From the NCBI RefSeq assembly GCF_031769215.1, contig NW_026781981.1:1612001-1676000 (forward strand): a stretch of DNA of 64,000 nt. The letters are read 5' to 3'. Each line of letters begins with the position of its first letter. The stretch's first letter is position 1. The position numbers and the translations under genes are program-made. Origin of the DNA: Ylistrum balloti. Lineage: Eukaryota. Below the pieces are notes generated by a model. It saw only the letters and a program-made list of their open reading frames with translations, was not told the origin of the DNA and searched no databases. Below, in pieces: positions 6,350 through 57,835 of this stretch.

Positions 6350-9300
6350 AGCCAGATACCATTATTTCTACTATAAGACCTTCTCCTTGGTTTGACTGCA
6401 TTGAGAATGGTGGTAAGAAGCTTGGATAGAGGTTCCGTTCAACAAGTAGACGTGTCATCAATAAATCGTTGTTTATGTTGATATTTGAGAAGTTTAGAAA
6501 TCCAATACATATGGGAATGTCCGTATTCATATTATTAACGGGAATTTTATCATTGAATTTGATACTTAAGTGTAATTAACTAGCATTTAATCTTTGGAAA
6601 ATCTATAATGTTTAAATAGGTTCTCCTATGTTGTCGAGCTCACCTAGTCCTGGTCTTTCCATGAAATATAATAGTGTTTTCAGACGGGGATTAGATAATC
6701 AAAGATCTTTTCTGTTTACACAATGACATATTAATTTTGAAAATTAGTAAGTGTCGGTTTGGTAGATTTGAAGCTGATGCTTCTTTTAGAAAGAATTCTA
6801 TTCACACTGAAAGCAAATCTTACGCAGCAACTTTCCGTTTTCATCCACCCTTTTTAACTGATTACCTTTTTACGTACCTCTTGAAAAAGTAATTTTCTCT
6901 TTATAGAAAGGTAGCATAGCATATATTTAAAAAAAACTAAATTGCGTGGGACTATATGTGTCCAGTGGACACTGATTTATGGAGCACAAGAAAATGCCGA
7001 AAGCGGAGTAATTCTAAGGTCAAATGATTTAACTGTTTTCGTGTACGTTGTTCGGAAGTGACGGACGAGTTCATCTCGGAAATGAATAGTTACATATCGA
7101 CTGTATTCAGAATAAAGTGTAGAAATAAAGTGTGATGTCAACTTCGACAGACCTTTGGACTTCTAGAACATGACTGTTGTTAACAGCAGCTCTCAAATTT
7201 ACCGTGGAGTTGTTTTTACTTATGTACTATCGGTGGTTTCTTCTCCGCTTCGTTTCATCGTTCGGTGACCGCGAAGAGAATTAAGGATAACTTCAGATGG
7301 AGGAGAAGTTTACAGACAATTAACCCAGTGATGGTGCCATATCAGGTACACCTCAATGAGCAGGCCCGACCAAGGATACACAACACCATTTCATAATCCG
7401 GTAACACAGATCATAATGACGAGATGGGCAGCAGCAGGAAAAATGTAACTGGACGTTCGATACGCGTGTATGGGCAATAAGAATTGAACGTTGAACAAAT
7501 TACCCGACCGGACAATCGACTCTGATTTCACCAAAACAATGAAAATGATATCTCTGGGAATAGTCGATGACTAGTACTTTATTCATCATGAGTAAATACT
7601 GGTGTGTGTTTTGAAAACAATGTCAAATGCCCTATAGTGAGTGCAATGCAATTCTTAAACGCTTTAAAGAAAATACCGATGTGTCAATAGTCTTGGTTCA
7701 ATCTCCGAATCGATCAAATAAGGGAAAATATGAACAAAAGAAAGGTTTCCAAGGAAACCCCTGAAATGTGCAAGGAGAATACGACTAGGTGTTTCGGAAG
7801 GTTAGAGTTTATAACTTTAAACATTATAAGCAACGTATATCCTGCAATTTGCTCATAGTACCGTCCACATCATGCCTTATTTTGGAAGAAGGGAATAGAA
7901 ATATTCCTGAATGTTTTGATATATTTCTCTTAAATTGACCTGTCTTCAAAGCCTGTCAACCAGTTGTCAAGGGAGACTACTCTCACATCGACCGTACATG
8001 TCCAATGACTCTTTCCTTCATACAGTGTTTGCACAAAATACGAATCGATCTATTCAGACGGAAAGAAATTTAATTTAACACTTGGGTTGCTGTCAGGATT
8101 TTATATTTTTGGTCTCCAAGTGGATTGAATCGGGCAATATAATCTTGTATACTCATTGAGGACGGCTGGTTTCTGCATGGATTCGTGTGTTAGTCTAATG
8201 AATACTGAATGTTCTCTTCAGCTGGCGTCAATCGGTGAGCTGTCATGGCGTCCGCGGGCGGCACAAGGAGACAGAGTTCCGATCGTTACACGGTCAGTGG
8301 AGTATGTAGACTGTATATACTGTCATCAGATATTATATTGCTGTCATTGAAGCAGACCAAAACATACATGTATGTGTAGATCAAATAAACCGTCGTTTCA
8401 ATTTTTCGTAAAAATGAGGGAATGAAATATATCGTCATATACAGAAGTATGCATACATCAAAAAGATATCGGTAATATGTTCAAACCTTTTTTAAAAATT
8501 AATTTTAAAAATGAGGGAATGAAATACATCGTCATTCACAAAAGTATATTTGTACATCTTTAACACATCTCAGTATATCCAAAATGATTCTATATAATGA
8601 TAACGTTCGTTCCTTAAGTGTGCGTTCCGTCTCTGACAATATATAAACTTTGATGATGATCATAATATAATGGTGGGTTTGTGATAGTATTCGGTTGTAT
8701 ATGAATTTTAAATAAAATAAGGATACAGCATAATTGTGTTCATTCATATATACTAGAAAGTTATCTATTTGATTAGTTTAGGAGATTCCAACAATTCTAC
8801 ATACAATTGTATAACTAGCCCCTAATCTAGGAAACCATTTTTATAAACGTATTCTATATTACTGGTATATATGTTATGATCCATTCATTTGTCCAGTTAT
8901 TTGTACGACGTGTGTATAAACTTGTACGCCGTTTACAAGAATATTCATTTTGAACTTTGTCTTGGAATTTCAGTCAGTTACAAGGAAGTTTTGAAATGCG
9001 GTTTGAGTATGAAAAAGTCACACCCGTAGCAATTCTAGATATAGACCTATCTTTATCGAAAGTATGATAATTTGTTTCTAGAATTCCAAAAAGGACCGTC
9101 GGTAATATATTTCCAATAATCTAGATACAATGATATGTCTACAATTTCTCTGCAATTAGAGAGACTTTTCGTTTAAACATTTCTTGATTAAAATAAAAAG
9201 AAAAGATGCGTTAGTTAAATATAATGACAGGCATATGATCTAAAGTATTCATGATTTTAAGACATTTTGGGAAAAAATTATTATGTTTATCTTCCATCCA

Positions 9301-10562
9301 GAAAATATCTCTCTGCTTGTCTGTGGTTTATAATCATCACAGATAATTTTTATATCATATCTAAAAATGTTCCCGGTCATATGTCCAAATGCATTACCGA
9401 ATTCAGTCATTTTTGGAAAATGTTTTGATTTCCACCCACCTTTCAGAAACATCTCACTGTTTCTTTATGCATCACAACCATTACACAGAGTTTTTTTGTA
9501 TTTTTAAAATGCATGTCATAAAAATATTAACAAAATGCAACGATGTTCGAGAAGAGTTTGTGGTTTATATGCAATTACATGTTACATTTAATTAAATTAG
9601 CTGGTGAAAGTGGAGAATGACATTTTTTTCTCTTCAATGTTTTATGTTTTGCAAACTCGTTGTCTACAGACACCAAATGACGAATTGCGTGAGTAAGGTT
9701 GACTGTTGACGGCTAGTGGCACGTTTTACTATGTACAGTTGACTATAGCCTGTCCGCAACCCGTGTTTTATATGTTATAAATTTGATGGTTGCCTGTCTT
9801 TGGTTGCGTGTGTATGACCAACTTGCATCGTATATAACATCGCTTTCACCAGCCCCTGGGTATCCCAGTCTTCTCAATACCTGTTGCGTGTTCGGCATGA
9901 TGATTTTACGCGCCATTGTGCGTGCTGTGCCTTCGTGCCGCAGAGGATAAGCATAAATATTTAATTCAGCGCCCGCAAAATAATTCTCCATTGTCTATTT
10001 CAATCAACATTGTTGCGTTGCTCCTCTGGCATTAGTGTCAGACCCAACGTAAAGTCTGTAGTAGAGGAACACATGGCTTTCAACGGGAGATTATATATTC
10101 TTCACATGAACACGAGTAGGGAGGGAATCATTTAATCACAGCGGCAACAGTAGAGGGGTATGTCTAATAGAACTACAAACTATTGTGGTAAGAAACAGCT
10201 TAAAACACACCACAAGTACTACCTGATGGTCGCATATAGTTTTATCACAGGACAACAAGGGTCCACATCACGATACAAAAACGGAATCACAAAAGTTTCA
10301 ACCAAAGCTGTGATAAAATAATACGGTATAATATTGGAATCTATATTTAGACAATACTTTGAGAGTGAAGTAGAATATGTCTAGACACAGCGGTGGACCT
10401 TTGAAAGGTGAATCTTTCCATAGCCATATAGACAAGAACTTAATAAAGATATACAGGTGTGAGACAGTGATATTTACGCAATGTTAGTAGGCGAAGTAAG
10501 GTTGTATTTTTTGTATTGCATTCCAGGGAAATCCCATTCATATATATTAGGGATAAATCATA

Positions 10563-10739
10563 CAGTGGACTCTGTCTAAACCGGAGTCTGTGCAATCCAG
10601 ATATCTGCCTGATCCGGTCAAATAATTAGGTCCCAGTTCCAACAATATTATAACAATGGACTCTCTGCAATCCGGAACTCTCTACAAAACGGCCAAATCA
10701 TTCAGTCCTGAAGGTGTCCGCTTAAGACAGATTCCACTG
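10563..10739. mobile_element. 177-bp MITE (pogo/Tigger-like, TA target duplication)
   Basis: The left end CAGTGGACTCTGTCTAAACCGGA and the reverse complement of the right end CAGTGGAATCTGTCTTAAGCGGA are near-identical. TA lies on both sides (10561-62, 10740-41). It is non-coding. Confidence 0.85.
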
Positions 10740-11051
10740 TACAATTTTTATGGACGGCAGAATTCGATCATCATCGCCATATGTTATCCACTGATCAAAC
10801 GTTTTGGTCAGAGGTTGCATTTGTTACTGGTCTGATAAAATACGGGTATACATTTAAAGTCAAACAAAGCTATGTCATCAATGTGTTTATTGAGTCGCGA
10901 CAGAGAAAGAGATAAGAAATTTTGAATGTTTATTTCGTCCTTTTTTTTACTTTCTCTTTCCGTTTGGGACATGCCATGCACTTTTCGTTTTTCTATTATT
11001 GTATTGCAACTAACCCACGTGACAATAAAATATTGACTCTTACATTTGCAG

Positions 11052-11206
11052 ATGATAGTCAAAGAGTTGATATGGCTTGCGGTAACACTAGTCTGTCATC
11101 ATCAGCAAGATTGTGTTTGATGGTCGTACTCCCGCAGCTCTTAATAACACTTTGGAGTGGTACATCGCGATATAGCACCAAAGTCGAGAGTAGGCTATCG
11201 AGATAG
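11052..11206 (+). CDS. Possible terminal exon encoding a hydrophobic membrane-anchor-like segment; gene unresolved
   Basis: Acceptor TTTGCAG|AT, with frame DDSQRVDMACGNTSLSSSARLCLMVVLPQLLITLWSG...stop. The opposite strand is also open and no homologue is recognised. Confidence 0.25.
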
Positions 11207-11454
11207 AATATCAAGGGACAAGATGGCAAAAACGGTGTATTGGAAATACTCGACACAAAGGGTAAAAAGGGGTAACAGGCATATAGGTGACACATCACCA
11301 GAACATAGTGAAGGACACACATAGCAAGGGAGATTTAAGTGTAACGAGACAGTTATATGTATTTAGATTTGAGAAGGGATGGACGAATGAGTTTATTTGC
11401 GAGGGCAGGACACACCTATCAAACAACAGGGATGTAAGAGTATGTAAAGACAAT

Positions 11455-12686
11455 GAAAGGGAGGGAACAATCTTAGCACAGCATGGAGGGACATGTCCGT
11501 TATCACGGTAAGGGAGGGACCAATCTTAGCACAGCATGGAGAAACACGTACGTTATCACGACAAGGGAGGGGCAAATCTTAACACAACATGGAGAGACAT
11601 GTACGTTATCACGGTAAGGGAGGGACAAATCTTAACACAGCATGGAGAGACATGTACGTTATCACGGTAGGGGAGGGATAAATCTTAACACAACATGGAG
11701 AGACATGTACGTGATCACGGTAAGGGAGGGACAAATCTTAACACAGCATGGAGGGACATGTACGTTATCACGGTAAGGGAGGGACAAATCTTAACACAGC
11801 ATGGAGGGACACGTACGTTATCACGGTAAGGGAGGGACAAATCTTAACACAGCATGGAGGGACACGTACGTTGTCACGGTAAGGGAGGGACAGGTGATAA
11901 CACAACATGGAGAGACATGTACGTTATCACGGTAAGGGAGGGATAAATCTTAACACAGCATGGAGGGACATGTACGTTATCACGGTAAGGGAGGGACAAA
12001 TCTTAACACAGCATGGAGGGACACGTACGTTATCACGGTAAGGGAGGGATAAATCTTAACAAAGCATGGAGGGACATGTACGTTATCACGGTAAGGGAGG
12101 GACAAATCTTAACACAGCATGGAGGGACACGTACGTTATCTCGGTAAAGGAGGGATAAATCTTAACACAGCATGGAGGGACACGTATGCTATCACGGTAA
12201 GAGAGGGACAGGTGATAACACAACATGGAGAGACATTTACGTTATCACGGTAAGGGAGGGACAAAACGTAACACAGCATGGAGGGACATGTACGTTATCA
12301 CGGTAAGGAAGGGACAAATCTTAACACAGGATGGAGGACACGTACGTTATGACGGTAAGGGAGGGACAAATCTTAGCACAGCATGGAGAGACATGTACGA
12401 TATCACGGTAAGGGAGGGACAAATCGTAACACCGCATGGAGGGACACGTACGTTATCACGGTAAGGAAGGGACAAATCTTAACACAGGATGGAGGACACG
12501 TACGTTATGACGGTTAGGGAGGGACAAATCTTAGCACAACATGGAGGGACACGTACGTTATCACGGTTAGGGAGGACAGATGTTAACACAGCATGGAGGG
12601 ACATATATGGTATCATGGTAAGGGAGGGACAAATCTTAACACAGCATGGAGGGACACTTATGTTATCACGGTAAGGAAGGGACAAG
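11455..12686. repeat. 53-bp satellite, about 23 copies
   Basis: Unit ACGGTAAGGGAGGGACAAATCTTAACACAGCATGGAGGGACA(C/T)GTACGTTATC; the period is seen at 11611 and 11664. Confidence 0.95.
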
Positions 12687-12734
12687 TAGGTACTGTGGTC
12701 ACGGTAACATGAGCACATGTTTTCAGACCCGACG

Positions 12735-13075
12735 TGTAGCTTGTTTGCAAGATAGGAGAAGGACATGTAGTTTGTAAACAAGACAGGGGAGTGACGTGTA
12801 GTTTGTAAACAAGAAAAAGGAGAGACGGGTTGTTTGTAAACAAGAAAAGAGAGGGACGTGTAGTTTGTAAACAAGAAAAAGGAGAGACGTGTTGTTTGTA
12901 AACAAGAAAAGAGTGGGACGTGCAGTTTGTAAACAAGAAAAGAGAGGGACGTGTAGGATGCATACAAGACAATCGAATGACACGTAGTATACAAATAACA
13001 CAAAGTGGGATATGTAGTATGTTAACAAGACAATGAAGGGACGCGTAGTACACAAACAAGACAAGGGAGAACAAG
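12735..13075. repeat. 29-30-bp minisatellite, about 11 copies, decaying rightwards
   Basis: Unit approximately GTAGTTTGTAAACAAGAAAAGGAGAGACGT. Confidence 0.9.
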
Positions 13076-13429
13076 TTCTATAGCTTTAGGAACAAAAGCA
13101 CGATGAAATATAATGATATAGATATACAGATATGTAGAGATATTGATTATCATATCAAGGAGCGGAAATACTAATGTATTTATCTTTAACTCACATATTG
13201 CTGATATTCATAGTTTGGTGAATCAAATTAAATAAACAATGACGCGCCAGGTAACAGTTGTTGGAGACAAAATATATTAATTTTTTTTAATGTTTACATA
13301 ATGTATAATTTGTAAATCATCATTTACGACAATAACCCTGCAATGTTGTTTTCATGATATCAGGACGTAGAATGATGCAAGGGAGACAACTCTGATTTGA
13401 TACCTATAAAACAGGAAGAAGTACCGAAA

Positions 13430-13745
13430 AACATGTCTTGTGCTGTCCCCACTGGGGTTCGAACTACAATGTCCCGACCTTTCGTCAGTCTGTAGTTAAA
13501 TGAAAATGAAATTCACATAATCCAAAACTAGGATGGCTACGTGTACTCTCAAATTCTACAGTACTCTCACCTTCACAAGTCTTTGTCCCCGAAGACAAGC
13601 AAGTGTAGTAACTCGAACTAAGAATCTCACTCGTGGAATTAAATGACTAATGAAAAACATTGCTTGTCCTCGCCTGGGTTCGAACTAGCGATCTTTGTGT
13701 ATCTAGCCGAACACTATACTACTCGCCCAAAGGAAAAGTACTACC
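13430..13745 (-). mobile_element. tRNA-derived SINE head fragments (two related copies)
   Basis: Minus-strand B boxes GTTCGAACC lie at 13685-13677 and 13464-13456, each followed by GGACA..C..TGTTTTT. An A-box-like GGGCGAGTAGTATAGTG lies upstream of the first. It is not a foldable tRNA. Confidence 0.55.
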
Positions 13746-15193: not shown

Positions 15194-16757
15194 TACTGGA
15201 CAAAATAAGTTAAGGATCATAAATTGTGACCATAATATCTTCAAAAATTCAAATCATGTATTGCCGGTAATTGCACTCGTAGTTTCTCCAATATGTACCT
15301 AAAGTCATGTCAAAGGTGAAAGCACGTGCATCTGAAGGTCTTGCCGTTCCGCTCTAGTTAACTATGGTGGTGTGAAAAACTGACTGGTCTATTACTACAG
15401 AGGAATCTTGCAGGTTTTGATTCTGTTACTTCTAAGCTAAAAAAAGTTGAATTTGGAAACATTTAATCAATTTGTAACGAAAACTTGAAAAACTAATCAT
15501 GCGAAGACATTTAAATGATATGGAAGCCGCGCGAGCTATAGGGCTCCTTCAAGCTGGTCAAACTCAACGAAATGTAGCGGCACAGCTTCATGTTTCTCAG
15601 AGCGTGATTAGTAGGCTATGGAATCGCTATCAACAGACAAATAACGTCCGTCAACGCCCCAGATCTGGACGACCACGCTGTACGACAGCCCGACAGGACA
15701 GATTCATTTGCATCACGGCACGACGTCAGCGGTTTTTGAGTGCTCCTGTCTTGAATCTTCAGTTTCAGCGTGCTACAAATCTAAGGATTTCATCCCAGAC
15801 AATCAGAAACAGACTCCATGCCTCTAATTTACGAGCTAGAAGACCAGCAGTCCGACCATCCAGAGGTCATCGACAATCCAGACATCAATGGGCCACTCAT
15901 CATTTGAATTGGCAATTACGTCATTGGAGAAATGTTATGTTCACAGATAGTCTAGGTTTTGTGTTGACTTCCATGACGGTAGGAGGAGGGTATGGAGAAC
16001 CCAAGGAGAGCGCTATGCAGACTGCTGTGTTGTCCAGCATGATCGCTTTGGTGGTGGGTCAGTGATGGTTTGGGCAGGGATCAGTGTTGACTTCCATACA
16101 GACCTCTACATCATAGACAATGGATCTTTAACAGCTGTTCGATGAATACATTAGTAAGGCCCATTGCAGGAGTTGTTGGCCATGATTTTATTCTGATGGA
16201 TGATAATGCTCGTCCTCACCGTGCTCGTGTGGTCAACGACTATCTTCAACGTGAAGCAATCGTTCGCATGGACTGGCCAAGTCGTTCTCCTGATCTGAAC
16301 CCTATCGAGCATGCTTGGGACACCTTGCAACGCCGGGTTTCATCGACCTAATCCGCCACAGAACCGCCAACAGCTTATGATTGCTCTGCAAGAGGAATGG
16401 CAGCGCATCCCACAGATCAGCCACCGACGACTAATAAGGAGCATGTGCAGACGTTGCAGGGCAGTTATTGATGTCAACGGAGGTCATACTGCCTATTAAA
16501 CTGCCAATTGCAGTTTGATGAGTTTTCCTTGTCTACATGATTAACTTGCTCTACTTCCTCTTACACTTTGATTTCAAGGGTGCTGTTACTCAGGGTTATC
16601 TGCTCTTGGTAGCAATTACCACAAATGAATTTGTTTTGTGTAATTAAAGACTAAAATGAATGTTCTGTCATTAAAATTTAAAATATAATCATATTATTAT
16701 TTGTATGTAAAACTGCACTGTTTCAAGTTTATGATCCTTAACTTATTTTGTTCAGTA
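15194..16757 (+). mobile_element. Full-length but inactivated Tc1/mariner (DD34E) transposon
   Basis: 30-bp TIRs (15194-15223 and 16728-16757, 1 mismatch) are flanked by TA. The transposase at 15499-16499 has an HTH region, GRPR, MFTD, DDNARPH and SPDLNPIEH, with 34 residues between the second D and the E. Confidence 0.95.
15499..16499 (+). pseudogene. Tc1 transposase pseudogene with at least three frameshifts
   Basis: Frame changes are needed near 15950 (TD/ESRFC), 16140 (AVR/NTLVRP) and 16345 (RVS/RPNPPQ). The reading ends GGHTAY-stop. Confidence 0.9.
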
Positions 16758-17429: not shown

Positions 17430-20400
17430 TCACATCAGAAAAAAACGATACAGGTATGCTATTATCAACACTGCAATGAGAACAAGGTACATCATGACTC
17501 CGGTCTCGTTTTGCTTGCCCCCCATTGCCCGTGTGCGGAGAGCGGATACGGCGTTGTCCCATTGGGACAAGATGGCTTTGCGAGCTCCAGGCCAGGTTCT
17601 AGAACCCTGAAGACGGTACTGGTAGGGTGAGCATGGGCCAAAAAAACACTTGAACGCCAAAACGGGATCGGTCAACATCAATTTAACTGAAAGCACAATG
17701 TCTTGAATGTAGTGAATATATATGAAACATTTGTTGTTTACAGGACTTTGTTGCCGGTTGACACATAGAACATGTGTCACCGGCCAGATTGAGATTCTCT
17801 ACGTTTAGGAGGGGACAACGTTTGAAATGAATACAAATCGACCATGTGGTTTAATAATATCTCCTGCTGGAATGACTACACAAAGAATTCGATATTTGAA
17901 CAGTATTTCTAATTCCTGACTAGTAGGGTCAGGTGCACTTACGAAAGTTTGGTCGGTTGCCGTTGAGAGTGGCCAACTGATCCATGTAGTTGATGAAATC
18001 CACTTGTATTGTGTGGCGGGCTGACTTAACATAACGAGATGCCATCATGTCCCTCTTCATCTTGATTTCATCCCACATTTCTTCCTTAGGAGGCAACGTG
18101 ACATCGCCCTGTGGTGTATAATCAACCGTAAGTATGTTTAGATCTAATTTTATTACGTTACTGTATAATACATTTCTTAAGTGCTAACCAAATTTTGTAT
18201 CCTTCGTAACTGTTGTCAGGCAGAACGTCCGATAATACAGTAGCCATTGAAAACAGACCGTATGGATTCTTTTGGGCGTTTTATCACAAATAAAACAAAA
18301 CATCTTCTTTAATAATTCCTTGGCAGTTTGAAAAAGATTAGTAAATCATCCAGAACTTGGGAAATCATCTTGCACTAAACCTCAGTTATGGTTCCTCCAG
18401 CCAAATTTAATGAAAATGTTTACGTTAAGAGAGTTCACTCCTTCAATTGGCAGACAACATCACACAAGAACTTAAATGGTTTATTTTATTGCAGCGAACA
18501 GAACTAGAACGAGAAGCAATTCCAGTGGCAAACTTTATAAAGGGGAGTTGGAGGTATGAAATGGTCAATAAGACTTCAGGTGTCATAATTCCAAGCATAT
18601 TGCTATTTGGGTTTTTTTTTATTCCAATAAAATATCTTTAGGATCATGGCCTACCTTGAAAACACGTGTGGCTAGTCGACACTGCATTTCTGAGATTGGC
18701 ATGAGGGCTCCAATAGGTTGGAAGCAGCCTATCACAGCTAGCGTGTGTCTGACCTGATCGGGAGGAAACATGTATTTGTACATTTGGATCTGGTTATCCT
18801 TTACATCCAGTACGGATTTATGAATGAAAGGAAATCCAAACACATAGCCCGTGGCGAGTATGACGTGATCAAGGTTATCCACGTGACTGTCGTCTTCAAA
18901 TATAACGCCGGTGCGCGTAAAGCGTTTGATGTTAGGTTTAATGATGATTGACCCACACGATAGACGGTTTGGAAGTTCATCATTTGCCGTTGGATGTTGG
19001 GCCAAAGGGCTGTGATCAGGCTCAAGGCCGTAGGATTTGTGATCAATGCGTTTGTTTAGCCATGTTTTCATCATCCACGTGACAACACTGACGGGAAGCA
19101 GGTTAATGACAACATCCAACCATCTCTGTACGACTATCATGTCTACTGGCATGCCGGACCCGCCCATACGTGAAAACACCCAGCTTCCTCTTCTGGTAGA
19201 TAGGTACAACTGAGAATTGCAGTAAATAAACTGAACATGATTGTACAATATTACGATTTTTATCAATAAAACAAATTATGTAATTAGTCGTTTCTTGAAT
19301 CAGTCCTTATTGCTGATAAACGAATATTCCCATGTACACGTTACTAGTTTTAATTATGGATGGATGTGCAATTAAAAGTATCAAAGACGGTGAAAACATA
19401 AAAACAAAAACACCGGTCAAAATATCGACTGACACGATTTATCATTGGATGAAAAGAGAAGATTCCTATAAAGACAGAATTGTCTATGCAGCTGAAAACA
19501 TGACATGAGCAACGATTATAAAGTACCTGGGATGCTACACGACTGAGCTCCACAGCGGCGTCCCCACCAGAGTTGCCGATGCCTACCACCACGACGGACT
19601 TTCCCTCGTATCCCTGACTGCTCTTGTAAGTATGCGAGTGGATGGCAGTGCCCTGGAACTCCTTCAGACCAGGAAAATTAGGCATGTTCTCGTGGGCATG
19701 GTGACCTGTGCAAACAAGGACGGCGTCGAAGACTGTCTCTTCCTCTTTACCTGAAGCCATGTCCTTTACTTTTATAGACCACTGTCCGGTCTTATAAAAG
19801 TCGGACGTAGGTTTGACCATCAACACCTTTACAACAGTTAAACGATAATAGTAAGAGAGAATGGATAGTTAGACCATTTTAGACGCTATAATTAAAGAGC
19901 GAATTGGTAGAAGACGGGTTCGTAAATCCGAACAGTCTTATTGGGATTGTAAATGAAGTTTCCATCTTTTATATAAGACCGTCTTAATTCAAACAGACTT
20001 TGTCCAATAGGAAACGTATTTACGAAATCATTGATAACATGTATATTTTTGACCCCAATTTACAATTAAGCATACCTCTGTTTGGAACCTTATATATTTC
20101 TTTATATTAAAGTGTTCCACATATTCATCAAAGTAGCTTTTGACGTGAGTGTTATGGAGGAACATGGGGTATTCCTTTGGGATGGGGAAGTCGCTGTAAG
20201 ACATCATCTCTTTGCTAGTGTTGATAACCGTTGATTTCATCACGCATGCCTGACCTGACCTCACAGCCTCCGTGTAGTTCCATAATCCACCTTAAACCAC
20301 AAAACAACCTCAATGGCATATACATAGCAACAATACAAGTGAAGAGACAATATTGCGGGACTAAGAGAGGACAGTTGTCTATGCAGTGTCATAAACTTCT

Positions 20401-26784: not shown

Positions 26785-29700
26785 ATGTTGCGAATACTGA
26801 GTCGATCCACAGTGAGTATCCTTACTTTTAGGATTCTTAATAGATGCATTGGAGACATAGAAACCCTCTATTTCCGTGACTGACATCATTGCAAGCTTAT
26901 CTGTAAATGTGCGTTCGGATTGTTATCTTGATATGTGTCTGACACCTCCATGTTAAACAATTGCTGACTACTAAAAACGACAATTTTCAGGGCCATACAA
27001 AAACATACAGAATTTATACCGAATGCATATATATATATGTGAGAGTTTATTCATAGTAACCTCTGTGTACATATATACAATACCATCATTGTATTTTATC
27101 TGAAAATGAACATGCCCATTTTGTACAATTTAAGTTAAGTTAAGGTCCTCATCAGCTTCAACTTCAACACAACAGTTCGACTTCCGTCTGGCTCGGACAG
27201 GTGGCTGATTTGGATAGCAAATTAAAAATACTTTCACATCTACACTTGACATTGTACATGGATATCTCCTGTCTGTGTTCTGATGGTCATGAGCTGCAAT
27301 CATGATTCATGTCAAAATTTGAGCAAAATGAAAACTGTTGAATCTGAATGAAAATGAATAATTGATACTCTTTGTCTCAAAGTAAAATGTTGTTGATGAT
27401 GCATATAAATGTGCAGGTGAAATAAAAACAATTCTTACAAATAAAATACTATTCGAACCATATTGATCAAATTGGCATAACTAATTATAAGTACACTGAA
27501 TTAAAAGCAAGAAACAAGTATATAACAAGCAGTTTGACAGATAAAGAGGTCATACATGTAATTTCAAAACCTGTAAATGATTGTATACATACAGCAAAAT
27601 ATATACTAGTATACCCCAAATAGAATGAAACAACACATAGATTAAAGCATAAGTGATTTCCTATATATATCTGTATAAATTTTGCATGCAGATTTGATAG
27701 TGTGTTTTTATAATGTCCCATTATCGGACTTTTAAACTCTTTGCTTTCACCTGCACAGTTCAGTTTCCATATTGCTTTAGTCCAGTTTTTTATACTCCAT
27801 GCATCCCTTCAGATAATCTGATGGACTCTTGGGAAGATTTTACACCAGGGTCATATATCACACCATATCTATACACGTGATCAGATTTCAGTGGTCAACA
27901 TTCAAGGTCAATTTCAAAAGGTCACCCAAGACCATCTTTGCGTAAAAAAAATTATTTTTCAGTAATCTCTGAACAATGCATTTCATTATTCTGCATGCCA
28001 TGCATATATAGCATTATAGTTAAAAGTTCTATGCCTGATTATAAAAAGGTTTTAGTGGTCATCGATCAGTGTTAAACCTCAAAGGCTAGGCCACATTTTA
28101 ACTTGGCCATACATGTTTTAAAGTAAAGAACTTGAGTACAAGATGTCTCATGATAATTAGCACTGAACAGACATGGTTGATATTTATATGAAAAGATGAT
28201 AGAGGTATATCTATGTGAGCCCCAGCAGATGTACTTTGTTTTTAATTAATTTATTTATCTATTTATTTATTGTTTTGGAACAGACATACTGAAACAAATC
28301 TCCTAATCATTTAATTTTAAACTTCTAACTTATATGGAATTCAATCATGACCTATTTTGACTGGCTGTGATCAACAGTAGATCATTAGGCATATCTGCCA
28401 CTATGAAATGTGGTTATACATATATGTATCTGCATATTGAATATACAGATTGTACTGGCAGATAAAGTGGAATAGTGCTGTCATTTTCAAATAAGTTAAA
28501 GATGTCTACATTTGTGTTTTAAATTGTAATGGAAATTAATATGTGCAGCTCATCAATACAGTGTGTGTCCACCATTGGAATTGATGCATACTTGACAAGT
28601 GTGCTGAAAAATGCCTGGGGACTTCCATTCCATATTCTTACAAGTGCATGTGACAGGTCAATAACGTCAATAGCTGATTTTGGAGGCAACATAAGCAACA
28701 CTGCATCTCGTCCCACAAGTGTTCTATAGGCGACATATCCAATGACATTGCAGGCCAGGGCAGCACATTCGCATTGTTCTGGATCAAAAGTCGGTGACGG
28801 CCAACACAATGTGCAGACAAGCATTATCCTGTTGCATGCATGGTGTTTTGTTGCTGCACAAATGGAATGATGTGAAGCCAAATGATTTTGTGGAAGCATC
28901 TGATGCCTGTAAGTGTGCCATCCACATCCACATCTACAAGAGCTGTTTTCCACAAAATGAGATGCAACCCCACCCCATAACACTACCTATGCTGAATGGA
29001 CATCATGGAATCACACAACCGTCATTGAAACATTCACCAGCATGACAGTACACTCTAGAATGATCATCACTGCTGTCAAGATGAAGTCTGGACTCATCTG
29101 TGAAAAGAACATGTGCCCAGTTTCAAGCTTTAATCAATAAAACTGAGCAATACATGGACATTTTACACTGGCACAGTTTCTTTTTTCTGCTAGTATATAT
29201 ATTGTATACAATGGTAATCAACCATGTGATGTCACAATTCCAAATTCCAGGTAATGCTCAAAACACAAGGATTAAAGATGAAGTAGTACTGCCATTTTAG
29301 ATCTACTTAAAGATGTCTACATTTGTTTTTTAAAATGTAATAGAAATCAATATGTTTATATATATATATATACATATATGTAATGTTAATCAACCAGATG
29401 ATGCCACAATTCCGTATTCCAGGTAATGTACGCAACACAGGAAATAGGATTAGTTTATATAGTGACATATATTTAATGTACATTATATACACATACATAT
29501 TGATCTAGACAATTAATGCACCTTGGCAGCTTTAAGAGTACCAGGGTAAATAGTCATGAAGAGGCAATGACTAAACCGGTAGTCATTCTATCATAAAAAC
29601 CAGTAAATTTCCTGCTTTCATTTATCTGTGTGAGTACACTCCTTTTCCAGCATATACAGAGATATAGAAGGAAAGACTTGAAAAATTATTTTGAATCCAA

Positions 29701-32700: not shown

Positions 32701-35700
32701 ACATTGCTCTCTAGTGCTTATTTCAGAAAAGACGTCTTTAAAGTTACAACACTATCAGAAATTATAATAACATCTTATAAAAATGACTATTAAGATGGCA
32801 TTTTAATGTCTGTTGTCTTTATAAATAGATCTTTTTTTCAGATTTGCATCCAAGTTAATTGCTGGTGTCTTGGATTTCAAGGTCATGATAGACACGTAAG
32901 ATTCTTTTTTTAAGGAAAATTCAATATTTTTTGTCTAGTTGGAGGGATAGTTGATAGTTTATTGTAAACATTTCTTTTAAAGATTAAGTGAAAATATTGA
33001 ACAAGATATTTGCCACTTACTTGTTGACCTTCTTCAGGAGAATAAATTGTACAGTGAACTCCAACAGGACTTTGTTGGTGACCTCAAACAGGGCATTGAC
33101 TTGTTTTGTGAACTCCAACATGACATTGTTGGTGAACTCCAACAGGACATTGATTTGTTTGGTGAACTACAACAGGACATTGGCTTGTTTGGTGACCTCC
33201 AACAGGACATTGATTTGTTTGGTGACCTCCAACAGGACATTGATTTGTTTGGTGAACTCCAACAGGACATTGATTTGTTTGGTGAACTCCAACAGGACAT
33301 TGATTTGTTTGGTGAACTACAACAGGGCATTGGCTTGTTTGGTGACCTCCCACATGACATTGACTTGTTTGGTGACCTCCCTCAGGACATTGATTTGTTT
33401 GGTGACCTCCCTCAGGACATTGACTTGTTTGGTGTCAGGACACCTTGTTTGGTCCCTCAGGACATTGACTTGTTTGGTGACCTCCCTCAGGACATTGACT
33501 TGTTTGGTGACCTCCCTCAGGACATTGACTTGTTTGGTGACCTCCCTCAGGACATTGACTTGTTTGGTGACCTCCCTCAGGACATTGCCTTGTTTGGTGA
33601 CCTCCTACAGGACATTGACTTGTTTGGTGACCTCCCATAGCATGCTGACTTGTTTGGTGACCTCCCTCAGGACATTGATTTGTTTGGTGACCTCCTACAG
33701 GACATTGACTTGTTTGGTGACCTCCCATAGCATGCTGACTTGTTTGGTGACCTCCCTCAGGACATGGACTTGTTTGGTGACCTCCCATAGCATGCTGACT
33801 TGTTTGGTGACCTCCCTCAGGACATTGACTTGTTTGGTGACCTCCCTCAGGACATTGACTTGTTTGGTGACCTCCCTCAGGACATTGACTTGTTTGGTGA
33901 CCTCCCATAGCATGCTGACTTGTTTGGTGACCTCCTACAGGACGTGACCTTCCATAGAATGTTGACTTGTTCAATTAACACTGACGAGAGACTGACATGT
34001 TTTATTTTCCAATGATGAAAAGTTCATGGTTATTGTGTCGTTCGGGTGTCTTCTGTTTTAGTCAGGCTGTTCCCAATTCGCTGGTATGGTTTGGTTCATA
34101 TTGGCATTAAGTATATTCTCTTTCATATACAGTGAACCTTTGATAATTTGAATACTGATAGTAGACAAAACTCACCATGCAGACTCAAATGTTGGATTTC
34201 CATAATACTAATTATATTCACCAGTCTGGAAATTAGAATTCTAACTTTTGGGAGTACTTTTGGGAAATGGAATGAAGTTTTCTTTGTAGTATTCCTGCAA
34301 TAGTATGGGCATTTGTTTTGTTACCACATGAAGAAAATTTGTTGTGTTCTGTTTCCTGTACCAGAGGTGTACTGCATACTGCTAGACACCATGTTTAATC
34401 CAAGCGACTGCCACTCTATCATCACCCAAAGCGTTCCCTTTTAGGACTCTTGTTAAAGTTAATGGTACTTCTATACAGGACCAATTGAAATAATTGTAAG
34501 GAAAGTATCAGAACTTTAGTCTAGTCTTGTTTTTAAACATTTGACAATTAATTTTCAATACCTTTATACATGGCATGTTCTATATGGAGAGAAATGTTGT
34601 TGTTTCCTAAGTTTTTTGTATGATACTAACTGGGATATATATTGTTATATTAACATAAATCGTAATGAGATGAAATAGATCAAAAATGTAATGAAAACTT
34701 GATATAAATTATAGAAATAGGAAATCATAGAAATGTGACATCATAGAAATGTGACATCATAGAAGTTCGAATCTAATAAGACTAATAACAATAGGGGAAT
34801 TGTCCCTCTATACTTTCACATATGTAATGAGGAAAAACATGGCATAGATTTCCATGTTATCATTCAACTAATAGATAAGAAAGTGAAATGAGAAGAAAAA
34901 ATCAATTTTTGAATTACAGTATTTCATTATGTTTAAATTGGTAAATCTCCTACACACATGTATTTAAAATACTTAAATGTGTTCATTATGCAGTCAGCTA
35001 AACCGACTCACTTGATTCTGAAAATAATTCCAGTTGACAACAAACTATCATCAACAAATTGGCCAGAAAATTGTGGCAAAACACCATAAGTACTCTATAT
35101 GTAAATTTTATTCAGAAAGAATGGATTATTAAATATGAATTAGTAAAAGATCATTGTTGATACAGAGCAGACATTCAAGGACTCATCTGCAATATTTCAC
35201 TTTAATGAATAGCGAAAACCTTCCCCTTGGAAATTTTAATTCTTATATAACTATTTTTGAAAAAGAAACTTACTCAAACAATAAAAGACATTTTTTTTAC
35301 AGTCAATACTATGTAGACATTTGAAAACAATCATACTGATGACTTCATCATCAGGTAATCAAGGGAGATAACCCTGGTTATATTGGTGATTGTCTAAACA
35401 CGACTGTCTGGAAAACACGTCATCTGGATGATTTTGACCAGGAAGGAAGGTGTTCAGATTGTCGAGGGTCCACTGTAGTACTCATATAATTACTGAGTGT
35501 AACTAGCAATTACATTGATACATTTTGTATTTGAAATAAGACAAAGGAACATAGTAATCATCACAGATCTTACAAAAATGTCTTTATCATAAATTACCTT
35601 TTTGGTCTATATTATAAATCACATTTTTGGTCTACAGCCAGAACTTGCCTGTGGAACACATGGGTAAAAAACCTCTGTGTATGACTCAGTACTACAAGAT

Positions 35701-45149: not shown

Positions 45150-46540
45150 CTGTTTATTTAAATTAAATGATGTTGCTACAATATGCCATCGATCTTGTTA
45201 ATTGTTAATTTTAAATTTCTTTGTCGTATCATTCAAACTGCATGACGCCCACATATGCAGTATCTGTATCAACACTGTGGATATAATAAAGAAATGCTGA
45301 AAAGTTCTACAAAAAAATCACGTCACATGTACGACAAGCAGCTTGGTCTTCTCTTAATGGAAATGGTAGGGTAAACACATGCATGCCCTGTTCGGAGCCG
45401 AGAATGGACAACTTCTTCACTACGGTTTGTTGGGTCAGGAAGGGATGTTCTTGCAGTTTCTTGCATTTTGAGTAGTTGGTTACTAGTCTATTGAAACCAT
45501 CGTTGCTGTCAACTATCTTTGTATACAGCCTTTATGGAGAGTTTAAGATCAGTATATGGTAATTCATGTAGTCTGTAAGAGATTTAGGGCGTTTTTCTAC
45601 TGTATACAGCCTATATGGTTGGTTTAAGATCAGTATATGGCTGTTTATGTAGTCTGTCACAGATTTAGGGCGTTTTTGACTGTATACAGCCTTTATGGAG
45701 AGTTTAAGATCAGTATATGGTAATTAATGTAGTCTGTAACAGATTTAGGGCGTTTTTGACTGTATACAGCCTATATGTGTAGTAATTTATGGTCTGTAAC
45801 AGAGGGCGTTTTTGACTGTATACAGCCTATATGGAGGGTTTAAGATCAGTGTATGGTAATTTATGTAGTCTGTAACAGATTTAGGGCGTTTTTAACTGTA
45901 TACAGCCTTTATGGAGGGTTTAAGATCAGTATATGGTTGTTTATGTAGTCTGTCACAGATTTAGGGCGTTTTTGACTGTATACAGCCTATATGGTTGGTT
46001 TAAGATCAGTATATGGTTGTTTATGTAGTCTGTCACAGATTTAGGGCGTTTTTGACTGTATACAGCCTATATGGTTGGTTTAACATCAGTATATGGTAGC
46101 TTATGTAGTCTGTAACAGATTTAGGGCGTTTTCGACTGTCCTGTTAGCTTTCCCACTACTAGCGTTTTCAACGGTATCCTGGAATTCACAGAAATATTAT
46201 CAGTCTCTTGAAATTTGACCTAGACATGTTTTGAAGTCATGTGTAACTTAAGACATTTTTGAACAGTGAGTTTAAGCTCACGATTGGTTTTTCTGAACAC
46301 TCAATCCATGACACATACTTCTGCAGAGAATATGAAAGCATCATCAGGAAGACGAACGGAATGTTTTTGATATATCATGCTACTACAACTAGTTACTCAT
46401 TCAGTGTTTATAGAACAGGTTGTGAAGGATAATGTGAGTTCAGAGATGTTTGCATTGTATGTATTTGGAAACGCAGTCGACTTGCCCAGAACATGTAATG
46501 AAAAGTCTAAGTCATAAAAACGTTTTTGGGCTCGTAAACC
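45150..46540 (-). mobile_element. Decayed 3' part of a non-LTR retrotransposon (I-clade-like, RNase H plus C-terminal Cys region), interrupted by the 80-bp array
   Basis: Minus-strand peptides occur in the expected order: YDLDFSLHVLGKSTAFPNTY, RLPDDAFIFSAE (46354-46319), KANRTVENALNL, PYTDLKPTI, *QQRW..TSNQLLK, EEVVHSRLRTGH (RLRTGH 45400-45383), REDQAACRTC. There are many stops and frameshifts; the ends are approximate. Confidence 0.75.
45520..46139. repeat. 80-bp minisatellite, about 8 copies (one internally deleted), LINE-derived
   Basis: TGTATACAGCC recurs at 45520, 45601, 45681, 45761, 45817, 45897, 45977 and 46057. Confidence 0.95.
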
Positions 46541-47885: not shown

Positions 47886-48105
47886 CATATGTTGTTTGCC
47901 GTATATACGATGTATTTTTAATCATCGAATCTCATGTATATACTTTGCTAATCTGTTTCATTTTATGGGAGCTTTGCTGACAAATGTTTCTAATATATAT
48001 ATGTGTAAAGCACGATGATTGAACAACAGACAACCAAATGAAAAGCGCCTTTCAATATAAATTTGTACAGTAAAACCAGATATGTAAATTAAACTCCAAT
48101 ATAAA

Positions 48106-48365
48106 ACTGTTTCGTCCATCTAGGACTCGTGAGTGATGCTACATCATACAGTTGTTTCGTCCATCTAGGACTCGTGAGTGATGCTACACCATACAGCTGT
48201 TTCGTCCTTCTAGGACTCGTGAGTGATGCTACATCATACAGTTGTTTCGTCCTTCTAGGACTGGTGAGTGATGCTACACCATACAGCTGTTTCGTCCTTC
48301 TAAGACTTATGAGTGATGCTACATCATACAGCTGTTTCGCCGTTCTAGGACTCGTCACTGATGCT
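48106..48365 (-). ncRNA. Tandem array (5 full + 1 partial, 45-bp unit) of degenerate minimal type I hammerhead ribozyme motifs
   Basis: Minus-strand unit 48230-48186 reads A GCAUCA CUCACGA GUCC-UAGAA-GGAC GAAA C-AGCU-G UA UGGUGU. This gives stem I, a CUGANGA-like core, stem II, GAAA, a 1-bp stem III with a palindromic loop, and a GUA site. Every copy has at least one core substitution. Confidence 0.75.
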
Positions 48366-49868
48366 AAAGGCCTAAATTTTTAAACCTAGACGGCGACTGA
48401 AGAAAATTCAAAGTTATTAACAAACATCTCAAAATTAAGATGGGGAAGTGCACCTGTCCCATATTTCGATAATTTCATTTATTTAGTTATAACAAAAGAC
48501 CGACAGGTACACGTGTATATTCTGAAGCATTCTATTTTTCGAACGAATTAAAATGTAGACGGATTTTAATATACCTATTCGCCTTGATTTTGACGTATCC
48601 TTGTGTATATTCGTTGTCGATTTTATCGCTAAATTTAATTATAAACACATGAAATAATAATTACCTAATATCTTTCATAGGAACATGCCCTATAGACATG
48701 TTCTAATACATAATATCTGCACAGTTACCAAAGTACGATGCCATTTATAGACAAGAATGACACCTGTAAATCTTATATCTACAAATAGATCCCCAAGGAC
48801 ATACAAAACACGCATGTCTTTAACACTACTAGGGCAAAATGAATGGTCATAATAGATTTAAAGTCAGACATTTGACGGGTTTAGATAGGATAGACTAGAC
48901 ACCAATGTAACCTTTGGCTTCTTCCATGAAGGCCTAGACAAAATAATTTACTGTTAAACATTTGCTGCGATATATACTAAAAATAGATATGTTTTATCAC
49001 ATGCTCTTTGAGTATTCAGGCGTTAGAGACTTATCTTTTGTGTGATTTGTTAATTAAGTTCTTAAAGGAAATACAATTATTTTCGAATTCATTAACTGGA
49101 CATTACATTTATATCAATTGTAATTGCCGACGTTTGCACGATGCCCATACAAACAGAGAATATTAAACAAATAAGCTGTATTGATATTAATATGGAATAC
49201 CGGGTGTTCTTTTACAAGTAGTTGGAATAAGGCGCTCTAAAGTTTGGTTAACCATGCTGTAGACTTCTTTACCGTATCGATATTTCTCTGTATTTTCCTT
49301 GTGGTCAATACAGTACTAGTGTTCCAAGGGTCGTGTATATAATTTGAAAAGCTACTTAGTTGCTTCAAAGGTACTACAGACATAGTACAAACATTTAAAT
49401 TATCACGGCCCTTTCTATTCGTAACTGATCCGAGGTGATTATACAAAAAGTTGACCGCGGGGGAGGAGTCTGTAACTAAAGAAAACAATTCAACTGACTA
49501 ATTATAATCTCAACACCGGGTTTGTGTATGACGACTGACAGGTACCTATTTAATTAATGGTCGTATGCTTTTGACAGGTACGGGGCGCACTATCCCCGTA
49601 GTGTGCATTGATCCATGTAACACCGTTGAATTATAATTAAACTATATGATTGACGTCACTGTAATATGTGTGTAAGGTTCAATACTTCGAAACCATTCAA
49701 TGACACGGTAGGTTCACTGTCTTCGTTTACCAAATATGATTTATTTATGTAGGTATATACACACCGTGTTATCCGTTACATGCCAACCTAGGACAGACTG
49801 ACAATGCATGGATCTGCATAGATAGGTCGGTACAAACATGTTCAAGACTCTTCTGCCATTGTATCACA

Positions 49869-50381
49869 ATGGCCGAACTCATAGACTTGGATATATGTTC
49901 TAGCCCTCAGGGGGAAGTTGTAAAAGTTACCAGTAATCCCCGAGCAAATCTTATGTTCTATTTACACTGTATCAGTAACGTTTTGGATTTAAGCGAACAT
50001 CCTGCCGACATAACCAAATTAAGAGATTACGAAAACTTTCATCTTCTATCCGACGATGAAGTTGATGACCTTATTATTCTTTCTGTGCAATTTTACCCAG
50101 CGATACTTATAGACAAATGTATCATATTAAATGATGCGAAATGTGGGAAATACGAAAACAGGTATGTGGATCTTCCAGATGCCCACATGGAGTACCCGGT
50201 AGTGGAGACCATGACGATTGGTGGGGTCGAGTACCAGGTTATGCGTGCTATGTACTTCACAGTAACTTTCATAGAGGAATATTACTACATGCCAATGTGT
50301 CATTTCAATGATAGACTAGACAGGCTAAAATCGGCTGCACGACGTTACAACGGCACTGACACATGTTGTGCGATCCTTTGA
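49869..50381 (+). CDS. Uncharacterised intronless 170-aa protein with a C-terminal CaaX motif (CCAIL)
   Basis: The uninterrupted 513-nt non-repetitive ORF stands out in AT-rich DNA. It has a good start context (acaATGG), globular composition, ends in C-A-I-L-stop, and has AATAAA at 50804-50809. I cannot name a function. Confidence 0.8.
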   Translation: MAELIDLDICSSPQGEVVKVTSNPRANLMFYLHCISNVLDLSEHPADITKLRDYENFHLLSDDEVDDLIILSVQFYPAILIDKCIILNDAKCGKYENRYVDLPDAHMEYPVVETMTIGGVEYQVMRAMYFTVTFIEEYYYMPMCHFNDRLDRLKSAARRYNGTDTCCAIL

Positions 50382-54780: not shown

Positions 54781-55208
54781 AGTCAAACGCGAATGTTTGT
54801 ACAAAGTATAGCAAAGTCAAACGTTAGTTTTTGTACAAAGTTTTGCAAAGTCAAGCGTGAGTTGTTGTACAAAGTATAGCAAAGTCAAACGTGAGTTTTT
54901 GTACAAAGTATAGCAAAGTCAAGCGTGAGTTTTTGTACAAAGTATAGCAAAGACAAGCGTGAGTTTTTGTACAAAGTTTTGCAAAGTCAACAAAGTATAG
55001 CAAAGTCAAACGTGAGTTTTTGTACAAAGTTTTGCAAAGTCAAGCGTGAGTTTTTGTACAAAGTATAGCAAAGTCAAGCGTGAGTTTTTGTACAAAGTAT
55101 AGCAAAGACAAGCGTGAGTTTTTGTACAAAGTATAGCAAAGTCAAATGTTATTTTTTGTACAAAGTATAGCAAAGACAAGCGTGAGTTTCTGTACAAAGT
55201 ATAGCAAA
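54781..55208. repeat. 34-bp minisatellite, about 12 copies
   Basis: Unit GTGAGTTTTTGTACAAAGTATAGCAAAGTCAAGC. Confidence 0.95.
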
Positions 55209-56369: not shown

Positions 56370-57835
56370 GTATTCACTGATTGTCAATCGATAAATAGAC
56401 GAACGAAATTCACCGATCGGCCCATCTGTAAATAAAGGAGAGAAATTCAATAAAAAATCAATCGATAAATAGCCGAAAGGCATATCGGTAAATAGAGTAA
56501 CGAAATTCACTGAACGGTCAGTTGATAAATAGAGGAAAGAGAATATCTGAAAGGTCAATGGATAAAAGTCGCATACAATTCATTGACTGGTCAGTTAATA
56601 ATGAGAGACACCAAATTCACTGATTCACTAAACAGAAAATCGATAAATAACAAACAACATTTCACTAAATAGTCGATCGATATGCGATCAAATGAAATTC
56701 ACTGAGTGGTCAATCGATAAATAAAGGAATGAAACTTAATGGATGATCAGTTGGTAAATAGAGGAAAGAAACTTAATGGATGGTCAGTCGGTAAATAGAG
56801 GAAAGAAATTTAATGGATGGTCAGTTGGTAAATAGAGGAAAGAAATTCACTGAAAGGCCAATCGATAAATGGAGGAATGAAATTAAATGGATGGTCAGTC
56901 AAAAGATAGAGGAAAGAAATTCACTGAACGGTCAATATATAAATAGCCCTACGGAATTCATTAAAAGGTCAATCGATAATTAGCCTAACGAAATTCAATG
57001 AATGGTAAGTAGATACATAAAGGAACAACTTTCAATGAAAAGTCAATCAATCAATAGCATAATGAAATTAACTGAAAGGTTATTCTATTACTAGTCAAAA
57101 CAAATTCACAAAACGGTAGATTAAATGGCAGCCGAAATTCACCGAAACGTCAATCGATAAATAGAGGAATATTAAGTAGATTAAGAGTCTAATGAAATTC
57201 AATAAACGGTCAGTAGATGAAAGGAGGATTGCAATTGAAAAAAAGTCGCTACAAATTCACTGAAAGCTCGATCTGTTAAACGACGACCGAAATTCAGTGA
57301 AAGGTCAATCAGTTAAAAGACGAACGGAATTCATTGAACGGTCAGTTGATAAATAGAGGAAAGAGAGTATCTGAAAGGTCAATGGATAAAAGTCGCATAC
57401 AATTCATTGACTGGTCAGTTAATAATTAAAGACACCAAATTCACTAATTCTCTAAAAGGAAAATCGATAAATAACAAACAACATTTCACTAAATAGTCGA
57501 TCGATAGGCGATCAAATGAAATTCACTGAGTGGTCAATCGATAAATAAAGGAATGAAACTTAATGGGTGGTCAGTTGGTAAATAGAGGAAAGAAACTTAA
57601 TGGATGGTCAGTCGGTAAATAGAGGAAAGAAATTCACTGAAAGGCCAATCGATAAATGGAGGAATGAAATTAAATGGATGGTCAGTCAAAAGATAGAGGA
57701 AAGAAATTCACTGAACGGTCAATCGATAAATAGCCTAACGAAATTCAATGAATGGTAAGTAGGTACATAGGGGAACGACTTTCAATGAAAAGTCAATCAA
57801 CAAAAAGACGACCGAAATTCATTGAAAGTTCATTC
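56370..57835. repeat. Degenerate 33-bp satellite with an approximately 824-bp higher-order duplication
   Basis: Monomer approximately GAAATTCACTGAACGGTCAGTCGATAAATAGAG. The block starting at 56511 recurs nearly identically at 57335. Confidence 0.85.

Follow-up and report, generated by a model that had tools for sequence, protein, structure and literature searches.

A minisatellite of 45-nt hammerhead units in Ylistrum balloti: most probably an inactivated, locally amplified member of an abundant ribozyme repeat family

Introduction

Non-LTR retrozymes carry their hammerhead ribozymes in genomic tandem repeats of ~150-450 bp, and the corresponding RNAs measure 170-400 nt (PMC7229834). In metazoans, these retrozymes co-occur with Penelope-type hammerheads in the genome (PMC7229834). 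Here we describe an array of hammerhead sequences in a 64,000-nt stretch of DNA from Ylistrum balloti (GCF_031769215.1, contig NW_026781981.1, positions 1,612,001 to 1,676,000 of the forward strand), referred to as the window, within which all positions are counted. Like the metazoan non-LTR retrozymes (Cervera and de la Pena 2020, PMC7229834), the array has the type I arrangement, its stems I and II measuring 6 and 4 bp and its very short stem III ending in a palindromic loop, and it shares with them the organization in head-to-tail tandem repeats and the low G+C content. Retrozymes, however, possess a spacer that folds into a rod (PMC7229834), whereas the unit of the array measures 45 bp and consists of the ribozyme alone. 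With such a unit, a spacer of 1 nt and mutated cores, the array falls outside the definition of a retrozyme, i.e., a repeat of 150-450 bp containing an active type I hammerhead and a spacer. Retrozymes are further characterized by their expression as RNA monomers in linear and circular form.

The minimal hammerheads of Penelope-like elements (Cervera and de la Pena 2014, PMC4209133) represent a second closely related group. As in the array, their stem III is minimal and has palindromic positions through which an extended stem III can form between two copies. Similar to the family of sequences related to the array, they are scattered through invertebrate genomes as numerous single copies and vary strongly from copy to copy (PMC4209133). 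In contrast, the Penelope-like consensus (PMC4209133) has a stem II of 6-8 bp, a stem I that is shorter than in the array and one base left unpaired between A9 and 10.1, all of which the array unit lacks. Penelope-like elements moreover encode a reverse transcriptase and a GIY-YIG endonuclease, whereas no such open reading frame is found near the array.

Tandem genomic repeats encoding a hammerhead on one strand, as the array does, are also represented by newt satellite 2, Dolichopoda pDo500 and Schistosoma Sm-alpha. Their units span 330-500 bp, of which the ribozyme is a small part, whereas the unit of the array is a whole ribozyme. Lunse et al. are said to have reported in 2017 that minimal hammerheads of Penelope-like elements cleave as dimers. 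A literature search for a hammerhead minisatellite, a link of hammerheads to a satellitome or a ribozyme-only 45-nt unit returned no description, with many subscription papers lying outside its coverage.

Results

Anatomy of the array

The array occupies positions 48096-48365 on the minus strand and is composed of six head-to-tail units of 45 nt, each of which corresponds to one complete minimal hammerhead. Tandem Repeats Finder reported a single array at 48107-48366 with a period of 45, 5.8 copies, 90% matches, no indels and a score of 422, i.e., the head-to-tail copies of a 10-100 bp unit by which a minisatellite is defined. A preliminary description of this DNA had proposed a minisatellite at 48106-48365 whose 45-nt unit is an entire hammerhead on the minus strand. 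Both the anatomy and the location are confirmed here, with the exception that unit 6 extends to ~48096 instead of ending at 48106. The number and order of the units are those of the assembly alone, short-read contigs breaking inside the array. The minus-strand start points of the units are 48365, 48320, 48275, 48230, 48185 and 48140, and their features are as follows:

Unit 1, 48321-48365, minus strand: core GUGACGA (C3G, G5 kept); 3' arm of stem II altered (G>C, A>G)
Unit 2, 48276-48320, minus strand: core CUCAUAA (G5C, C>U at N7, G8A); C>U in stem II keeps a G-U pair; A>G wobble in stem I
Unit 3, 48231-48275, minus strand: core CUCACCA (G5C, G8C); loop 3 AACU, which breaks the palindrome
Unit 4, 48186-48230, minus strand: core CUCACGA (G5C only); the unit nearest to the canonical form of the family
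Unit 5, 48141-48185, minus strand: core CUCACGA (G5C); A>U in loop 2, loop 3 AACU
Unit 6, 48096-48140, minus strand: core CUCACGA (G5C); five changes in the last third (stem III, cleavage triplet, 3' arm of stem I), which merges into the flank

Each unit, with a G+C content of 47%, is laid out as a spacer base A, GCAUCA (5' arm of stem I), the 7-nt core, GUCC-UAGAA-GGAC (stem II), GAAA, C-AGCU-G, UA and UGAUGU (3' arm of stem I), an order of parts that is that of a type I hammerhead. The unit-by-unit parse assigns 44 of the 45 nt, as had been proposed; the accompanying claim that no spacer separates the ribozymes holds apart from the single A per unit. Stem I can be read with the 6 bp attributed to it before, one of the six pairs being G-U, and in the tandem context an alternative self-closure of 5 bp with a UAG loop is possible. 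Stem III (C-AGCU-G) is minimal and palindromic when read directly, and ACAGCUGU is self-complementary. The unit therefore has the hallmark of the pseudo-LTR hammerheads of Penelope-like elements, whose stem III is minimal or missing altogether and palindromic at positions 15.2-16.2 and in loop 3. Among units 1-5, pairwise identity amounts to 39-43 of 45 positions, with the exception of unit 1 versus unit 2 (37), and identity to unit 6 ranges from 35 to 39.

Covariance models and RNA folding

At gathering thresholds, Rfam gave zero matches in the whole window. When reported by E-value, just three matches were significant in the 64-kb window, all of them to Hammerhead_3:

48194-48244, minus strand: Hammerhead_3 match, 39.1 bits, E 6.3e-5 (whole window)
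48104-48154, minus strand: Hammerhead_3 match, 37.8 bits, E 1.5e-4 (whole window)
48284-48334, minus strand: Hammerhead_3 match, 32.4 bits, E 4.8e-3 (whole window)

The search of the minus strand with Rfam hammerhead models, which the preliminary description had suggested, thus yielded significant matches that all stay under the curated gathering cut-off for Hammerhead_3 (48.5 bits, compared to 39.1 for the best array score). This shortfall comes mainly from the mutated core. The motif is not a product of chance, because an 18-nt piece of the unit matches six times in the array versus 0.00 times expected in shuffles and because the Hammerhead_3 matches are the sole significant ones in the window.

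All three alignments cover the full 54 model positions, beginning in one unit and ending in the next. As the alignments span the junctions and no spacer intervenes, the array is readable as type III hammerheads as well. In this reading, stem I is self-closed (5 bp, loop UAG) and stem III is formed between the ACAGCUGU segments of neighbouring units. When 51-nt junction-spanning pieces were folded with ViennaRNA, the minimum-energy structure was the three-way junction or a near variant in four of five cases, and contained an alternative stem I in the fifth. Two unit-length RNAs pairing via the palindrome reach a calculated -28.7 kcal/mol in ViennaRNA versus 2 x -7.8 kcal/mol apart. The covariance alignment and the folds place three helices around a junction in hammerhead order, and, as modelled in this way, the hammerhead architecture of the array is real.

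State of the catalytic core

The invariant core of hammerhead ribozymes of Rfam clan CL00010 (C3 U4 G5 A6 N7 G8 A9, G12 A13 A14 and the cleavage triplet) is intact in none of the six units, each being altered at C3, G5 or G8. Compared to canonical CUGACGA, C3G is present in one unit and G5C in five, two of which additionally carry G8A or G8C. These are the cores that had been read before, i.e., five with CUC, two of them also without G8, and GUGACGA in the distal copy. GAAA and GUA are retained in units 1-5.

Hammerhead cleavage requires G5 and the C3-G8 pair, and their substitution or loss lowers cleavage by orders of magnitude. Since none of the units has a full core, none is expected to be active, and from these core changes we infer that the array has lost self-cleavage.

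The state of the wider family was read from Logan contigs of four public runs mapped on 47950-48550 at 80% likeness, using summary tables and not individual copies. At 48131, 48176, 48221, 48266 and 48311, where the C5 of the array appears as G on the plus strand, the contigs read canonical G5 in 81-100% of depth, with >90% in all but one cell and 95-97% at 48221 in unit 4. At 48358, the C3G position of unit 1, canonical C3 accounts for 88-93% of depth. Across the places of core change, the canonical letter makes up 81-100% of the family depth, mostly 88-97%. Canonical core letters are likewise found in X7, a DNA-type run from another organism, and in X6, an RNA-labelled run from a third organism, neither of which covers the unique flanks of the locus. 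Because the family reads canonical letters at exactly the altered places, the core changes of the array are, by this comparison, derived.

As a control, metagenomes were scanned with a pattern of core plus stem II that allowed G or C at position 5, and G was present in 127 of 127 hammerhead matches. The scan returned 120 loci. Most were hammerheads of phages or bacteria without relation to the array, whose flanks suggest type II or III, and a few were type I motifs with a minimal palindromic stem III; a 45-nt array was not among these 120 loci.

Next to an inactivated ribozyme, the preliminary description had considered a spacer-less, ribozyme-only retrozyme whose multimeric transcript would release 45-nt monomers. 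In an active element of this kind, the monomers may be circularised by ligation and copied back into DNA. The tandem spacer-less layout of the array and its palindromic stem III fit dimeric hammerheads (PMC4209133), and an RNA-labelled run of a related organism contains family contigs with canonical cores. That run, however, shows no depth on the unique flanks of the locus. All six cores are altered at an invariant position, the canonical letters of the family differ from those of the array at exactly these places, and C5 occurs in 0 of 127 natural hammerheads of the same pattern. With no full core in any unit, activity of the array is very unlikely.

The array contains 11 distinct changes, four of which lie on the 11 invariant positions versus 2.7 expected (P = 0.27), so that neither purifying selection nor a protected core is apparent. 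This also bears on the idea that the C5 units are preserved for some cleavage-independent function, e.g., as a structured RNA, a protein-binding or a chromatin repeat. Three of the stem changes do preserve pairing through G-U wobbles, and the fold of the array is slightly stabler than shuffles (z = -2.1). On the other hand, changes are distributed over core, loops and stems roughly as expected under neutrality, unit 1 and the last unit are clearly decaying, and the mapped contigs of the four runs give no sign of transcription of the locus, which makes such a role highly improbable. To judge from its sequence and that of its relatives, the array most likely belongs to a very abundant family of ribozyme repeats, as a dead member that was amplified locally.

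Relatives of the array in public contigs

In X2 and X1, both DNA-type runs, the unique flanks have a depth of 8-15, meaning that both runs carry the locus. On the array itself, 12,700-13,600 contigs were mapped in these two runs and 7,300-13,600 per DNA run overall. The summed contig depth there reaches 10^5-10^6 versus ~14 on the single-copy flank, a ratio that is not a copy number. As far as mapped contigs can tell, the ribozyme family is very abundant, mostly canonical and shared with related organisms. The intact relatives that the preliminary description had proposed to look for elsewhere are represented by an abundant related family with canonical core letters. Longer contigs contain other arrays of 3.5-4.4 units.

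In X7, which stems from a related organism, hammerhead-only arrays with a 49-nt period and a different unit border were seen over 48186-48366. TTAGGG is present on the plus strand at each of their unit junctions, corresponding on the ribozyme strand to CCCUAA in loop 1, the reverse complement of the telomere unit. Telomere-attached Penelope-like elements pair such telomere repeats with hammerheads. The TTAGGG of these arrays may just be a piece of the element flank, which reads CTTAAGGG in the organism of the window.

The RNA-labelled run X6 holds 349 contigs of 65-252 nt, containing one to two and a half units, over 48132-48308. They carry canonical G5, and UAGGA is the dominant loop 2 variant. 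These contigs hint at transcription of the family in that organism, DNA being a possible component of such a library.

Flanks and carrier element

A consensus of the family flanks was built from the loose ends of mapped contigs where they leave a unit. Both flanks of the array are homologous to it:

48366-48411, minus strand, 5' flank on the ribozyme strand: homologous to the common flank of the family and hence part of the carrier element; depth 2,500-9,400 versus ~14 for single-copy sequence
48066-48095, minus strand, 3' flank on the ribozyme strand: homologous to the common flank of the family, more diverged; depth 110-120 versus ~14

Positions 48366-48394 agree with the loose-end consensus at 26 of 29 bases, and 48066-48095 at ~25 of 29 consensus bases, with gaps. 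As both flanks match those common to the family, the array takes up the ribozyme position within a copy of a short dispersed element. Contig depth returns to background within distances of ~45-65 bp and 30-90 bp on the two sides, which fits a small non-coding element.

Ten open reading frames of 52-170 aa lie within ~3.5 kb of the array, and a Pfam search assigned none of them to a family. None longer than 170 aa is found near the array, and no frame for a reverse transcriptase or GIY-YIG within 3.5 kb. The motif is therefore not located here in the terminal repeat of an element with reverse transcriptase and GIY-YIG, as it is in Penelope-like elements. The open reading frame running through the array had no match when searched against a protein collection for mis-called genes in other arrays. 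Scanning the flanks revealed neither tRNA genes or a tRNA-like head nor further repeats. Within the 64-kb window, no intact canonical CUGANGA...CGAAAC and no copy of the hammerhead motif beyond the array were found.

Discussion

How the array may have formed

We regard it as probable that the hammerhead module of an element lost G5, was amplified at the DNA level and then decayed neutrally. The starting point would be a short dispersed element with one minimal type I hammerhead, either retrozyme-like or derived from a Penelope-like element, lying here on the minus strand. The 45-nt ribozyme module of this element would then have been duplicated in place, probably first between direct repeats of 2-3 nt (Y-A-G) outside the stem I arms. 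The bases at these borders read UUUAG-CAUCA upstream and UGAUG-CAG in the family flank downstream, both containing Y-A-G, and a first slippage between them would account for a unit of exactly 45 nt.

After the first duplication, one unit would have gained G5C and multiplied to five copies by slippage or unequal exchange, partly in steps of 90 nt. Units 2 and 4 share a G at unit position 42, and units 3 and 5 share an A at unit position 34, forming a 90-nt higher-order repeat. Because G5C is common to five units with this alternating pattern, as would result from unequal exchange, amplification probably took place at the DNA level after G5C had arisen. The ancestral core would have been CUGACGA, given that unit 1 keeps G5 and the other five units share C5. 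The order favoured in the preliminary description, inactivation by G5C before expansion, gains support from the canonical G5 of the family together with the G5C that five units share in the 90-nt pattern. Alternatively, gene conversion could have spread G5C among pre-existing units, which alters the order of events and not the verdict. Since its expansion, the array would have drifted neutrally, with two independent changes on G8 and one on C3. What is observed comprises the structure of the units, their core mutations, the prevalence of canonical letters in the family and the homology of the flanks; the order of events and the duplication mechanism are what we infer.

A transcript of the array would still be predicted to fold into hammerhead three-way junctions, with stem III between the ACAGCUGU palindromes of neighbours, and would not be expected to cleave itself after GUA. 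The intact relatives elsewhere in the genome, by their mapped letters, carry CUGACGA, and any multimeric transcripts of theirs should self-cut into 45-nt pieces.

In a different scenario, the array would have been made at the RNA level. By reverse transcription of a hammerhead-only RNA in multimeric or circular form, or through repeated template switching of the enzyme, a multi-unit insertion would have arisen in which G5C was later spread by conversion. Rolling-circle models have been proposed for both retrozymes and Penelope-like elements (PMC7229834, PMC4209133), and the arrays of 3.5-4.4 units in longer contigs, as well as the 49-nt-period arrays with their different unit border in a related organism, which suggest repeated births, speak in favour of such an origin. 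We nevertheless consider it unlikely for this locus. The array sits exactly where the family flanks lead one to expect the ribozyme, with both flanks present, its 90-nt alternation and shared G5C are of the kind that unequal exchange at the DNA level generates, and there is no reverse transcriptase frame within 3.5 kb.

Significance of locus and family

Understood as a dead copy amplified at the DNA level, the locus alone is an ordinary fossil that changes little. It provides a clean natural example of how the DNA-level growth of hammerhead arrays can outlast the death of the ribozyme. Because a dead array would have expanded in this way, a tandem arrangement is by itself not evidence of RNA-mediated rolling-circle spread.

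The family is the more interesting object. It may, as a rather tentative proposal, be the smallest ribozyme repeat, in which hammerhead-only arrays (45 nt here, 49 nt in a related organism) arise repeatedly from single-ribozyme elements and are transcribed, with intact members cutting themselves into RNAs of ~45 nt. If true, these RNAs would lie far below the lower limit of ~170 nt reported for retrozyme RNAs. With a single ribozyme as its entire unit, such a repeat would be shorter than any other self-processing repeat known from animals, and the family would allow a direct test for linear or circular RNA species of 45 nt.

Other features of the window

The window is unusually rich in other minisatellites, located at 11457-12685, 33045-33943, 45520-46139, 54781-55208 and 56467-57826, with units of 53, 30/60, 80, 34 and 37 bp, some of which produce long open reading frames by repetition. 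The nearby 170-aa intronless frame at 49869-50381 on the plus strand, which has no Pfam family, is called as a gene in assembly record GCA_031769215.1. By eye, candidate Tc1/mariner transposase fragments can be recognized at 15499-16065 on the plus strand and 28519-28983 on the minus strand (a helix-turn-helix start and a C-terminal piece). At 18619-19826 on the minus strand, two open reading frames resemble, again by eye, exons of a flavin-containing monooxygenase and include a GxGxxG nucleotide-binding stretch.
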